Part shown: in pieces, positions 20,671-38,596 of the stretch
Position numbering within the stretch: the first letter of the stretch is position 1
How the letters are laid out: the number at the start of each line of letters is the position of its first letter
Sequence record: MW057919.1
DNA length: 64,000 nucleotides
Strand: one strand, 5' to 3'
Made by a program: the position numbers and the translations under genes
The notes under the pieces: model-generated
Told to the model about the DNA's origin: nothing
Database searches by the model: none
What the model saw: only the letters and a program-made list of their open reading frames with translations

Positions 20671-21177
20671 ATGTTCCTATTAGCAGGTATACGAAAAATA
20701 ATTGGTAGCGTGCCATTGCATATATGGTTACTATTAGTTATTCTGATAGGTGCCTTAATTGGTATCATATATTACAAAAATAGTTATGAGACGGAACTTG
20801 TTCGCTCTACAGATTTAATTGGAAAAATTAAATCTTATGAAGCGGCAGAAAAGGTTAGGATTGAATCAGATCGTATCTCCGATAAAATTCAAGCTGAACT
20901 AATTACTAAAAAGAAAGAGATACAAAAAGAGCAGGCGCAATCACGCACTGAGGTGATTGATGAGTACATTAGTTTATCAGGTCGTGGATATACTCCACCT
21001 GTATGGCCTGAGGTTAAAGCTAAAACAACTAATGGGGAAAGCACCACTACTGAGATTAAACATGAAACTGACACAAAAAAAGATAACATTAATAAGTCTA
21101 TTAATGCTATTGCTAAACGGATGTACGAGCACTACTGTGCCGCCTCCCGTGAAAATACCAGTTGCAATCCCAAGTAG
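20671..21177 (+). CDS. Inner-membrane spanin (Rz-like) candidate
   Basis: N-terminal TM segment (IWLLLVILIGALIGIIYY), coiled-coil region, C-terminal Cys pair; overlapped by a lipoprotein gene. Confidence 0.7.
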   Translation: MFLLAGIRKIIGSVPLHIWLLLVILIGALIGIIYYKNSYETELVRSTDLIGKIKSYEAAEKVRIESDRISDKIQAELITKKKEIQKEQAQSRTEVIDEYISLSGRGYTPPVWPEVKAKTTNGESTTTEIKHETDTKKDNINKSINAIAKRMYEHYCAASRENTSCNPK

Positions 21178-21424
21178 TTTACTTCTCCCTTGCGATGTGG
21201 AAGCCCCACCTACAGCTAATGAGATCATCAATGCATTAGATAGATATAAAGCTGTTGGGGTTACTGATGAGAATGAAGCACGTTTCTTACTTATGACCGA
21301 ACATTGGCTTTTACAAACTGATGCACTTGGACTATGTAATATCCAAGTAGACAAATTGCGTGAATGGAACGAACGTCAACGTAATTTGGAGAATAGTCAT
21401 GACCCTAGAGGACGTTCTGATTGA
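21062..21424 (+). CDS. Outer-membrane spanin lipoprotein (Rz1-like) candidate
   Basis: ATG 21062 gives MKLTQKKITLISLLMLLLNG-C lipobox, Pro-rich linker (VPPPVKIP..LLLPC) and helical C-terminus; starts inside the i-spanin gene in another frame. Confidence 0.75.
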   Translation: MKLTQKKITLISLLMLLLNGCTSTTVPPPVKIPVAIPSSLLLPCDVEAPPTANEIINALDRYKAVGVTDENEARFLLMTEHWLLQTDALGLCNIQVDKLREWNERQRNLENSHDPRGRSD

Positions 21425-34433: not shown

Positions 34434-34853
34434 TCAATTTGGAATACACTTCTCATGTAAACTTAATTTAAAGAGAGTTTTCAAATCCTTTAAAAAAGTT
34501 GCATCATCAGCATATTTCATCCAACACGGAGTCTTACGAATAAGCCTCATGAAAAATTGATCAGTGGTTAGATCTGCTTTATCAATCTTATCGATTGCTA
34601 TCACGCCTTTCCATACGTACGGCCCATAATGAATTGGGAGTCGTAAGGCAGCTTCATCGCGTACTAGTTTCATGTTAGAATTCAAATGAGAGATCTTTTC
34701 ACACTCATTTGTCTTACACTGTACTATAACGGAGTACAGTGACGCCATGACGCACATCCGCTTTAGTTCGGGATCAGCATAGTCCCAGAGCTTAATCCAA
34801 ATTGCCCTGAAACCATTCTTAACCGACTTTTTGAATCTGCTAATAAGGTTCAT
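34434..34853 (-). CDS. Hypothetical protein (gp154-like)
   Basis: Probable ATG at 34853, downstream of the RNase H stop; 139 aa. Confidence 0.65.
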   Translation of the reverse strand: MNLISRFKKSVKNGFRAIWIKLWDYADPELKRMCVMASLYSVIVQCKTNECEKISHLNSNMKLVRDEAALRLPIHYGPYVWKGVIAIDKIDKADLTTDQFFMRLIRKTPCWMKYADDATFLKDLKTLFKLSLHEKCIPN

Positions 34854-34863
34854 GGAATACCCA

Positions 34864-36312
34864 CTATTTTGGGAGAATAAATTGTGTATAGGGTGATTGA
34901 TAGATAGCTGAACCATCATCCGTCACGAACACAATTGAATATGAATAAGAATATGGGCCTTCAGCTACTACAAGAATTTCCATTTTAACTTTATTAGCTC
35001 CAATACGAGCTAATTGGTTTCTACTTGGAATATCGATATTTAATACAAGCTTTAATTTTATCTTACGATCTTTAAATGTGATCGGAACTTCTACAAAGCC
35101 TGTATTAGATGTAATCGTCTTAAGTAGTTGATAGCCAACTTTCTTACCCTTTGCGACTTCCTCGAAGAAGTGCTCGGTAATATCAATAATACCAACCGAC
35201 TCTCCAAGTTTACCAGCCAAGTAATCTTCAAGACGACTGCGCATAACATTAAATGTAGCTACAGCATCATTTGCCATACGTGGTGGATTAAGAGTCCGAC
35301 TAATGAGTTCATCTGTTGGCGTCGACAAAACATTGATATCTTTCCATACGACTAGAGCAGGTAGCCCCATGGATTCAATTTTCTGTCGAATGGTTGCACG
35401 ATATGCGTTTGCCAAATTGATGATACCCAGTTCTGGATTTTCAGTACCCAGTGCTTCTGTATGCATATTAATTAGTAACTGGAGATACTCATCTGGCTCA
35501 TTTGCCTTATATACACTGAAGGTTGCTTCAGAGATACGACGCCCTAAAATTAAATCAGCTTTAGCTAATTTATCTTTAGCAGTGTCTTTTGGTTTATGAC
35601 CATAGTTATGCATACGACCTAAGTTATAGGTGTAATAGAACCCATCTGGTTCTTCTCCAGAGTTAATGGCGAAGAGTAACCTACTTTCGAGGATAAGTGG
35701 ATTAACAACTTGTTTTTTAAGTTTGTTAATTTCTTCGCCTTTAACCGAAACCATCACTGGCTTATCATTATTCTGTCCCGAACCAAGCTTAGCATTAGCA
35801 TCAGCTTTTTCATTACCAATGTCTCCGTTATGACCGCGGACCCATTGGATGCTTAATGGTTTATTAGTTTCTTCCCATTTAGCTTTTAGTTCGACCATCT
35901 GTTTCCATAGGTCCTGGTTTGCTACCGGTGTACCGTCTGATTTAATCCAATTGGACTTAATCCATTTGGGTAAATATGCGGTCATACCTTTTCTAACGTA
36001 TTCACTATCCATGAGCATCGTTAGTCTAGGTGCATCTGCTTCATGGGCTATTTTGAAAGCCTCAATTGCAGCGGTTAGCTCACCTGTATTATTAGTAGGG
36101 TTATTAGTTACACTACCAAATGCATCAATATAATTTAAAACAGTGCATGTCTCATCTGCACCTACATCTAAGTATCCCTTAGCTGTTGGTTGCTGTTTGG
36201 TGGCTGCTTTAGATTTCATTGCAACATTTTCATAGGTATAACCATGAATGCCCCAACCAGCTTTACCCTGTCGGAATGATCCGTCAGTGTATAAAACCAT
36301 ACCGTCTGACAT
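34864..36312 (-). CDS. rnhA: RNase HI with long C-terminal extension (gp155-like)
   Basis: LYTDGS, NNTGELTAA, MDSEYV, WVRGHNGDIGNEKAD catalytic motifs; about 280 extra residues. Confidence 0.9.
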   Translation of the reverse strand: MSDGMVLYTDGSFRQGKAGWGIHGYTYENVAMKSKAATKQQPTAKGYLDVGADETCTVLNYIDAFGSVTNNPTNNTGELTAAIEAFKIAHEADAPRLTMLMDSEYVRKGMTAYLPKWIKSNWIKSDGTPVANQDLWKQMVELKAKWEETNKPLSIQWVRGHNGDIGNEKADANAKLGSGQNNDKPVMVSVKGEEINKLKKQVVNPLILESRLLFAINSGEEPDGFYYTYNLGRMHNYGHKPKDTAKDKLAKADLILGRRISEATFSVYKANEPDEYLQLLINMHTEALGTENPELGIINLANAYRATIRQKIESMGLPALVVWKDINVLSTPTDELISRTLNPPRMANDAVATFNVMRSRLEDYLAGKLGESVGIIDITEHFFEEVAKGKKVGYQLLKTITSNTGFVEVPITFKDRKIKLKLVLNIDIPSRNQLARIGANKVKMEILVVAEGPYSYSYSIVFVTDDGSAIYQSPYTQFILPK

Positions 36313-36367
36313 TATTGTTTCCTCATGTGATCGATTACTAAACTAGATAATAATTCTAGCAAGTAAA

Positions 36368-36769
36368 TTACTCATCACACTTTGCACGCCATTCTTCATA
36401 TGCTTGCTCAATTTTAGCGCGCTCAGATACAATATGTGACTTTAATTCTTTTATATAGTCAGTCAACAAGATATCGATTTGTTCCGGAGTTTCTATAAAC
36501 TCTGTAATAATCGGTGTTGGCGGTACCGGTTTCTTTCTTGGTAGTTCGAAAACCATACACTTCTTACTAGTATCCTTACTATATTTTTTAGGTGTAGGCA
36601 GAACTTTTTGTATTACCTCTTCTTTAGTTGTAACAACAGATGTATGATCATCTGTAGAAGAGGAGTGTTCATATTGGACCACAGTCGTGTTGTGCGTGTG
36701 GTACTCATGTGGCGTATAAACACAGCCACTTATAAGTGGTAGGAGTATTAGAAAGAACTTTCTTGACAT
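36368..36769 (-). CDS. Lipoprotein (gp156-like); second o-spanin-like candidate
   Basis: ATG 36769 with GGTGGA RBS; MSRKFFLILLPLISG-C lipobox; Pro-rich linker, C-terminal helix ending in Cys. Confidence 0.7.
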   Translation of the reverse strand: MSRKFFLILLPLISGCVYTPHEYHTHNTTVVQYEHSSSTDDHTSVVTTKEEVIQKVLPTPKKYSKDTSKKCMVFELPRKKPVPPTPIITEFIETPEQIDILLTDYIKELKSHIVSERAKIEQAYEEWRAKCDE

Positions 36770-36789
36770 GTGATCCACCAATTTGGTAC

Positions 36790-37080
36790 TTACTTTAGCA
36801 AGTCATTTAAACGACGGCGGCGCTCAAGCATTTCAGCCTTCTCAGGCGTCATTTTCTTGAGTCGATCCATTTCGGCTTTAACGGCCCAGTTGCTTGCTTT
36901 AACTGACTTCAACTCACTAGTCACTATGAATAAGGTACCTAGTAATATTACGACTAGGATCAACATCGCCGTGACGTGTTTGTTTTCCAGCAACACTTCC
37001 TTAATAGTTCTATCACCAAAGATAGCCCTCTTAAGGAATGGCCAAACGAAGAGCAAGGCTTTAATAGTCAAACCGAGCAT
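36790..37080 (-). CDS. Small membrane protein with coiled coil; second i-spanin-like candidate
   Basis: 96 aa, GAGG RBS; TM segment TAMLILVVILLGTLFIV followed by a charged heptad region. Confidence 0.65.
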   Translation of the reverse strand: MLGLTIKALLFVWPFLKRAIFGDRTIKEVLLENKHVTAMLILVVILLGTLFIVTSELKSVKASNWAVKAEMDRLKKMTPEKAEMLERRRRLNDLLK

Positions 37081-37255
37081 GATGACCTCTGTTAGTACTA
37101 TGCCTACCCATAAAAGCCAGTATTGGCATTTCTATCAATAGACTGTTACAAGGGTATTACGTAAAGCTCATAATACCAGACTTTTTATTTTAACACAACT
37201 AGAACAGACTGATTTTATAGATGGAAACCCATCGCGCTCTAATTATGAGGATTAA

Positions 37256-38596
<1,341 letters not shown>

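Follow-up and report, generated by a model that had tools for sequence, protein, structure and literature searches.

Analysis of the 64,000-nucleotide stretch of DNA considered here (sequence record MW057919.1, below called the window) indicated that it derives from Pseudomonas phage phiKZ, each window coordinate being the AF399011 coordinate minus 123816, and the region 36000-37500 was 99.3-100% identical to 47 phiKZ-like Pseudomonas phages, phiKZ itself (AF399011) included. The locus carries two genes on the minus strand. The first, PHIKZ156.1 (36790..37080), is annotated in AF399011, matched phrog_14813 at E 1.2e-43 and codes for a protein of 96 aa, the putative inner-membrane partner; the second, PHIKZ156 (36368..36769, from an ATG start to a stop codon; phrog_15897, E 2.2e-64), codes for a predicted lipoprotein of 133 aa. 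The two are separated by a spacer of 20 nt (36770..36789, minus strand) that contains the ribosome-binding site of gene 156, GGTGGA, and the ATG of gene 156.1 has GAGG 5 nt upstream. PHIKZ157, a head protein gene, is divergent and lies upstream of the pair, and downstream of PHIKZ156 two further genes follow on the same strand: PHIKZ155 (34864..36312), coding for the essential RNase H-like protein Nlp2 (Pfam RNase_H, E 1.5e-25; synteny; PMC12571901), and PHIKZ154 (34434..34853), identified by annotation and synteny as the final gene of a conserved block.

GenBank places the start of gp156 at a TTG four codons upstream of this ATG, giving a product of 137 aa; the start is most plausibly the ATG at 36769 (133 aa, MSRKFF...), with GGTGGA upstream and 20 nt past the gp156.1 stop. 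Chance ORFs were considered and rejected, given that both genes are 99-100% conserved in 47 phiKZ-like genomes, that each belongs to a PHROG of its own and that both are conserved across genera. Both also have published RPKM values and are covered by RNA-seq contigs from four libraries of four studies, such contigs being no proof of transcription, starts or levels.

AlphaFold2 was run on both proteins with a 13-sequence alignment, and its model of gp156.1 had a mean pLDDT of 72 and contained three helices, residues 2-21, 34-77 and 81-95. The sole transmembrane (TM) segment, residues 36-55 (36916..36975, minus strand), lies inside the second of these helices and holds the best 19-residue Kyte-Doolittle window (mean 2.81). 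It is followed by a charged helical tail without cysteine, residues 56-96 (36793..36915, minus strand), which is predicted to be periplasmic and ends in a conserved RR..L..LLK. Heptad a/d positions in this tail are hydrophobic in 5/6 and 3/5 of the cases, and the putative periplasmic part of gp156.1, with helices at 56-77 and 81-95, is helical with coiled-coil propensity, as in spanins, and 41 aa long.

Ahead of the TM segment, alignments and AlphaFold2 revealed a hydrophobic, amphipathic N-terminal helix, residues 2-21 (37018..37077, minus strand), predicted to be cytoplasmic and carrying the motif W-P-F-L-K. Conservation in gp156.1 is highest in this helix: residues W13, P14, F15, K17 and R18 are invariant in close relatives, and P14 and F15 hardly vary across genera. 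To our knowledge, known i-spanins have no conserved cytoplasmic N-terminus, and an N-tail of 35 aa would also be atypical for them. Homologues of gp156.1 in related phages showed 41-55% identity, and four parts follow one another in the TM family: the N-terminal helix (mostly W-P-F-[LIV]-K), a linker of basic character, the single TM segment and a helical tail, 35-136 residues long, in which Pro-rich stretches and cysteines are frequent. The charges that flank the TM segment are balanced in phiKZ gp156.1, and the N-flank is clearly more positive in the homologues of RSL2, Goslar, PCH45, SPFM2 and Erwinia phages. Since the positive-inside rule favours N-in across these homologues, the topology of the family is best read as N-in/C-out, similar to that of an i-spanin.

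Three regions were distinguished in gp156. Residues 1-16 (36722..36769, minus strand), delimited by sequence and a lipobox scan, form a signal peptide with a basic n-region and the lipobox L-I-S-G before C16, which is the signal expected of an outer-membrane lipoprotein. Positions +2/+3/+4 are V-Y-T, with no evident inner-membrane retention signal, and under the known Lol rules gp156 would be sorted to the outer membrane. Residues 17-70 (36560..36721, minus strand) form a poorly conserved, Ser/Thr/His-rich tether that AlphaFold2 predicted to be disordered, pLDDT being 39-54 over blocks 11-70 and below 50 at residues 20-28, 30-58 and 60-65; in the model as a whole residues 1-65 are disordered while residues 70-133 reach pLDDT 87-97. 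The third region, residues 71-133 (36371..36559, minus strand), is a predicted folded C-domain recognized by these pLDDT values, by its invariant residues and by hhalign alignment to CR5_184 of Cronobacter phage CR5. It consists of the motif C71-x-x-F-x-L-P, a Pro-rich strand (PVPPTP, residues 82-87) and a single long helix, residues 95-132, that ends at C131, three residues from the C-terminal end.

In close relatives of gp156 residues C71, F74, L76, P77, P83, W127 and C131 are invariant, and across genera the lipid Cys C16, C71, P83 and C131 remain so. The domain of the lipoprotein family can be written C-x-x-[FY]-x-L-P ... H-I-x-x-L ... W/Y-x-x-x-C, the tether being variable. A C71-C131 disulfide would plausibly tie the Pro-rich strand to the helix end. 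With no periplasmic cysteine predicted in gp156.1 and two in gp156 (C71 and C131), the pair has a cysteine distribution found in spanins. When the gp156 model was compared with viral structures by Foldseek, no matches emerged beyond members of its own family, and a word-indexed protein search with gp156 gave almost no matches.

A preliminary description of this locus had reported a 96-aa TM plus coiled-coil protein followed 20 nt later by a lipoprotein with an ISG-C lipobox, a PVPPTP linker and a C-terminal helix ending in Cys, and had compared the two to an i-spanin and an o-spanin. The ORFs on the minus strand, the single TM segment with its helical tail, the lipoprotein directly downstream and its three landmarks, and the 0 + 2 cysteines all bear this out; the coiled coil, however, is confined to about 41 periplasmic residues, because the AlphaFold2 helix 34-77 includes the TM segment 36-55. 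The same description had placed a canonical pair at 20.7-21.4 kb, which corresponds to gp141 and gp141.1 of the lysis cassette. These are the validated i-spanin (20671..21177, plus strand; phrog_7584 'Rz-like spanin', E 8.6e-70) and the validated o-spanin (21062..21424, plus strand; Pfam LysC PF23793, E 3.6e-10), and in 2026 they were shown to complement lambda RzamRz1am (PMC12894885). Like gp156.1/156, they are an inner-membrane protein and an outer-membrane lipoprotein of the same phage, but they differ in that their genes overlap, adjoin the holin and endolysin genes, match LysC and have a validated function. The phiKZ lysis cassette was reported to be necessary and sufficient for lysis in the same paper, in which gene 156 is unmentioned (PMC12894885).

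Judged from sequence, gp156.1 and gp156 are a Chimalliviridae-wide, two-component envelope pair of spanin type, real, ancient and conserved, with what appears to be spanin architecture. The explanation that we favour, tentatively and as a call that could nearly go either way, is that they are a true lysis spanin of a family-wide 'CR5 type', named after phage CR5, that acts beside or redundantly with gp141/141.1. As a spanin, gp156.1 would be an inner-membrane protein whose N-terminus lies in the cytoplasm and whose W-P-F-L-K helix lies on or in the cytoplasmic face, and about 41 helical residues would extend into the periplasm. The partner gp156 would carry its lipid at C16 and be delivered to the outer membrane, where its small folded domain, the Pro-rich strand and long helix probably stapled by the C71-C131 disulfide, would hang on a flexible tether some 55 residues long. 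The helical ends of gp156.1 and gp156 would then meet, so that the pair bridges the periplasm and, after removal of the cell wall by the endolysin, would fuse or disrupt the outer membrane. The lengths appear compatible with this, since about 6 nm of gp156.1 helices, about 5.5 nm of gp156 helix and a 54-residue tether may together span the 20-25 nm of the periplasm.

The layout agrees with that of a spanin in every feature that can be checked by sequence, with the topology charges balanced in phiKZ itself, and no other such pair was found in SPFM2, the relative of SPN3US, which likewise appears to speak for a lytic role. Against it stands that phiKZ already possesses the complementing gp141/141.1 in a cassette reported to be necessary and sufficient for lysis. 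The best-conserved part of gp156.1 is predicted to be cytoplasmic, its periplasmic tail is short (41 aa), the TM protein is kept without an adjacent lipoprotein in Goslar, PCH45 and Agricanvirus, and for neither protein was sequence homology to T4, lambda or LysC-type spanins found, all of which also weighs against a spanin.

A block formed by the genes for the TM protein, the lipoprotein, the RNase H-like protein Nlp2/gp155 and gp154 recurred across chimalliviruses of Pseudomonas, Ralstonia, Burkholderia, Xanthomonas, Salmonella, Cronobacter, Erwinia and Vibrio. Both genes of the pair were detected by tblastn, adjacent to one another, in phiPA3 (gp180/gp179), 201phi2-1 (gp242/gp241), Phabio, Noxifer, Psa21, PA1C/PS119XW, D6, RVTF4 and Viktualia. 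Weak matches at the syntenic position were obtained in Ralstonia phage RSL2 and Burkholderia phage SURPRISE13, and the same block was found upstream of the gp155 homologues of Xanthomonas phage LucasX, Salmonella phage SPFM2, Vibrio phage pVa-21 and Cronobacter phage CR5. Profile comparisons linked the more distant members: the TM proteins of RSL2 and LucasX matched phrog_14813 (E 1.5e-5 and E 3.4e-4, respectively), gp156.1 matched phrog_37076, the RSL2 family (E 0.007), the LucasX lipoprotein matched phrog_15897 (E 1.8e-4), and gp156 matched phrog_8165, which holds the SPN3US and Vibrio lipoproteins (E 1.8e-6).

The lipoprotein profile, compared with 1.84 billion representatives, matched 255 metagenomic 50%-identity clusters at E <= 1e-3. 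Among the best 149 of these 255 clusters a lipobox was present in 126, a Cys within the last eight residues in 125, and exactly two cysteines besides the lipid Cys in 114. All three distant metagenomic representatives that were inspected lie in the same block, on contigs of up to 320 kb, with a W-P-F-[IV]-K membrane protein of 136-159 aa, the lipoprotein, an RNase H protein of 508-540 aa and a gp154-like gene. The 156-type pair behaves like a conserved gene pair of a core block, unlike an accessory gene. Homologues of gp141 were tblastn-detectable in Pseudomonas chimalliviruses only, and the 156-type pair probably predates the spanin of the phiKZ lysis cassette.

Wherever a relative has both genes, across no fewer than eight host genera, the lipoprotein gene was found directly downstream of the TM gene. 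Goslar, PCH45 and Erwinia phage Deimos-Minion (Agricanvirus) keep the TM protein, and no adjacent or embedded lipoprotein was found at their TM genes; an embedded o-spanin was sought inside these three genes and discarded. This retention of the TM protein in Goslar, PCH45 and Agricanvirus argues for a TM role that is independent of a gp156-type partner, and it would suit an arrangement in which gp156.1 and gp156 act independently of each other. In that case gp156.1 would be a membrane protein that serves either the nlp2 operon or the assembly of capsids at the inner membrane, and gp156 would be a periplasmic or outer-membrane lipoprotein, for instance one that masks a surface receptor. The unequal evolutionary rates of the two proteins, with 53% identity to the phiPA3 counterpart for gp156.1 and 29% for gp156, point the same way. 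We nevertheless consider independent action unlikely, given the unbroken gene order, which extends to the metagenomic contigs checked, and the expectation that the helical ends of both proteins share the periplasm.

The reading of the pair as a spanin draws on a previous catalogue. In the census of the Young laboratory, CR5_183 (171 aa) and a lipoprotein of 148 aa are listed as a 'separated' two-component spanin of phage CR5, both as singleton families and as the only spanin listed for that phage, and an overlapped pair of the gp141 type is listed for phiKZ, 201phi2-1, Ea35-70, OBP and EL (Kongari et al. 2018, PMC6139136). The census assignment for CR5 is bioinformatic only. Like gp156.1/156, CR5_183/184 lie in a block with a virion protein gene and an RNase H-like gene, in the order virion protein, TM protein, lipoprotein and RNase H-like protein. 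The C-domain of the CR5_184 lipoprotein is homologous to that of gp156, as shown by hhalign with the gp156 profile (87.5%, E 3.6e-6, 65 columns, from C71 to C131). CR5_183 has the layout of gp156.1, with an N-terminal helix of LLP-L type, one TM segment and a helical, Pro-rich tail, although hhalign of the gp156.1 profile against CR5_183 gave no match because the TM partners are too diverged; the two TM proteins are linked instead by common layout, N-terminal motif and synteny. A further connection was provided by SPFM2_201, which matched CR5 in tblastn at E 6e-6. CR5 differs from phiKZ in the greater length of both proteins (171 and 148 aa), in an endonuclease gene inserted before the RNase H gene and in having this pair as its sole listed spanin, whereas phiKZ also has gp141/141.1.

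Genomes were scanned for a single-pass TM protein with a lipobox ORF inside or just after its gene, a crude heuristic whose criteria were loosened until both phiKZ pairs, the positive controls, were recovered. The scan returned two pairs in the phiKZ window (gp141/141.1 and gp156.1/156), two in RSL2 (the 156-type pair and, at 89.5-90.3 kb, a pair of canonical appearance with a lipoprotein that matches LysC weakly), one in SPFM2, of the 156 type only, and none in Goslar, a result consistent with the census for CR5. Since the census lists a 156-type pair for CR5 and gp141-type pairs for phiKZ and others, both pair types have therefore been called 'the spanin', each in different chimalliviruses, and the presence of both types in phiKZ and its relatives has, as far as we found, not previously been noted in the literature. 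The two types coexist in phiKZ, phiPA3, 201phi2-1 and RSL2, and such prolonged coexistence in several lineages argues against simple redundancy, while the restriction of the SPN3US group to the 156 type argues that such a pair is able to do the job of a spanin. The earlier suggestion of a 'backup spanin' is too narrow for a pair that occurs throughout the family and probably predates the lysis-cassette spanin.

Among nucleus-forming jumbo phages phiKZ serves as the model, and it is also a candidate therapeutic phage. The definition of its lysis system dates only from 2026 and does not include gp156.1/156. If the pair is a spanin, phiKZ would have two systems for disruption of the outer membrane, the family-wide one differing from that of the lysis cassette; the statement 'necessary and sufficient' would then need qualifying, and an explanation would be at hand for relatives such as the SPN3US group that look as if they were without a spanin. 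Otherwise a heavily studied phage would contain an envelope module that is conserved and probably matters for fitness.

Published expression data bear on when the pair may act. Gene 155 is reported to be co-transcribed with 154, 156 and 156.1, its level being high at 20 min (PMC12571901). In the available part of the data of that study the RPKM values at 15 min are 894 for 156.1, 608 for 156, 2975 for 155, 10697 for 154 and 2378 for 141, and after knock-down of ChmA or nvRNAP genes 156 and 156.1 show no fall at 15 min while 154 falls and 165 collapses (PMC12571901). This difference, within that part of the data, hints that additional promoters precede 155/154 and that 156.1/156 are transcribed at a low level, early or constitutively. 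Neither gp156 nor gp156.1 was found in the available part of the proteomics files of PMC10914614. Transposon sequencing of phiKZ recorded 0 insertions after trimming in orf155, orf156, orf156.1 and orf157, and the raw table has 23 reads at 5 sites for orf156 and 4631 reads at 6 sites for orf156.1 (PMC12676376). Such zeros can be polar artefacts, orf157 having zero and yet being deletable (PMC12676376). As a measure of essentiality the zeros of orf156 and orf156.1 are confounded by polarity on the essential orf155, and the same ambiguity attaches to those of orf141 and orf141.1, since the holin gene downstream of them has no mapped promoter of its own.

The indifference of the 15-min RNA level of the pair to knock-down of ChmA or nvRNAP, again in the available part of that study, is among several observations that could be accommodated if the pair bridged the envelope for a task other than disruption of the outer membrane. 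The cytoplasmic helix would then couple the state of the periplasm or outer membrane to a cytoplasmic partner. Such a bridge could time lysis, inhibit it after superinfection, exclude secondary phages or anchor an intracellular phage structure to the envelope. The concentration of conservation in the N-terminal helix and the persistence of the TM protein without the lipoprotein in three lineages would fit such a bridge, as would the coexistence with canonical-type pairs in the four phages named above and the fixed synteny with nlp2/gp155, the pair never lying in a lysis cassette at the loci examined. The Young laboratory, moreover, reports an MOI-dependent delay of phiKZ lysis for which there is no known periplasmic sensor. 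Comparisons with Pfam and PHROG, however, gave no homology to exclusion, antiholin or signalling families, and exclusion genes are usually accessory and variable rather than family-wide. That no other spanin candidate was found in SPN3US-type genomes also weighs towards a lytic pair, and we regard a bridge with a non-lytic task as possible but somewhat doubtful. The specific proposals of superinfection exclusion and receptor masking made in the preliminary description found no support, there being no Pfam or PHROG match to proteins of the T5 Llp or Cor type, and the family-wide distribution and fixed synteny run against the accessory pattern of such genes.

A more elaborate variant, which we think improbable, is a device that spans the envelope and is peculiar to nucleus-forming jumbo phages, in which the invariant W-P-F-L-K helix links cytoplasmic events to the outer membrane. 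Its inputs would be nucleus maturation, by way of the co-encoded Nlp2, or holin triggering, and its output might be a superinfection sensor that sets lysis timing or a spanin gated from the cytoplasm.

For the favoured explanation, a lysis spanin, a parallel in layout is PseT.3/PseT.2 of T4 (PHROGs 739 and 812; Pfam PF26831, Phage_T4_Spanin). The T4 genes, like those of gp156.1/156, are separate and adjacent and lie away from the holin and endolysin genes, so the distance of 156.1/156 from the lysis cassette is no objection to a spanin. PseT.3 is a small i-partner without cysteine, as is gp156.1, and PseT.2 has two cysteines and a C-terminal helix, as has gp156. A distribution of 0 + 2 cysteines is the commonest pattern in the census as well as that of T4, in which both cysteines are essential (PMC6139136). 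The pairs differ in that the T4 cysteines are 11 residues apart and those of gp156 are 60 apart, and PseT.3, unlike gp156.1, is without a conserved cytoplasmic N-terminal helix.

Membership in the T4 or LysC spanin families was rejected, since BLASTP, hhalign, family HMM and Pfam/PHROG comparisons gave no homology. BLASTP against PseT.2/PseT.3 gave E 12, hhalign against the same proteins found similarity limited to the signal peptide or the TM segment, and the HMM built from 149 lipoprotein sequences scored 2.5 bits against PseT.2. In a Pfam scan with a set that lacks PF26831, gp156 had no match at E <= 1 while gp141.1 matched LysC at 3.6e-10; Pfam scans of gp156.1, gp156 and ten homologues gave noise only, and the spanin PHROGs gave only noise-level matches to 12 lipoproteins of the family. 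When five chimallivirus genomes were searched with PF23793 and phrog_214, one weak match was returned, in RSL2, and no other. Likewise no sequence homology of gp156.1/156 was found to the lambda, LysC-type or gp141/141.1 spanins. A language-model search placed gp156 near PF26831 clusters (score 0.90, 191/256 features, 25/30 matches), a proximity that by the tool's own statistics is a lead and not a proof. The syntenic TM protein of the Erwinia phage showed weak matches to the i-spanin PHROGs 739 (E 4e-4) and 214 (E 3e-4).

The RPKM values available from PMC12571901 indicated that at 15 min after infection the transcript levels of genes 155 (RNase H-like) and 154 were 3- to 15-fold above those of genes 156.1 and 156, which code for the TM protein and the lipoprotein, respectively (window 34434-37080). 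Breaks in the RNA-seq contigs were found near window 36611-36651 and 36797-36810. The rise in RPKM toward 155 and 154 together with these breaks suggests the presence of internal promoters within gene 156 or just 5' of it, which matters for the question whether the lack of Tn-seq insertions in orf156 and orf156.1 after trimming (PMC12676376) is a polar artefact.

The start of gene 156 differs between annotations, the TTG used in GenBank and RefSeq lying four codons 5' of an ATG that bears an RBS (window 36770-36781). Gene 156.1 (window 36790-37080) is broken up in the record of KEN49 (locus L002, PP456877) into a 58-aa ORF and an ORF on the opposite strand. The deposited starts of Ralstonia phage RSL2 ORF056 and ORF055 (L011 3010-3507 and 3567-3902) and of Erwinia phage Deimos-Minion gp151 (L016 1980-2387) are too short and remove the conserved N-terminal helix or lipoprotein signal peptide, which was regained in all three with longer reading frames. 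The deposited start of Vibrio phage pVa-21 gene 137 (L018 723-1022) may cause a similar truncation.

Goslar (MK327938 97923-98426) and the SPN3US-like SPFM2 (LR535921 137595-138086) have in common a lipoprotein of 163-167 aa, distinct from the gp156 type, which carries two cysteines and ends in FF-x-CS; no TM partner adjoins its gene. One IMG/VR jumbo-phage contig harbors an 86-aa gp156.1 homologue (L029 2501-2761) with no lipoprotein ORF found within 600 nt 3' of it, and may represent a further instance of partner loss.

RSL2 also carries a putative, canonical-looking second spanin pair (AP014693 89510-90342, loci L032 and L038), in which the gene of a 165-aa single-pass protein shares 4 nt with that of a 112-aa lipoprotein matching the o-spanin family LysC weakly (E 0.012). 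The lipoprotein gene and the RNase H-like gene are separated by an inserted endodeoxyribonuclease gene in the lineages of SPN3US (SPFM2, L014 1770-2489), CR5 (L070 2833-3561) and the Vibrio phages (pVa-21, L018 1735-2481).
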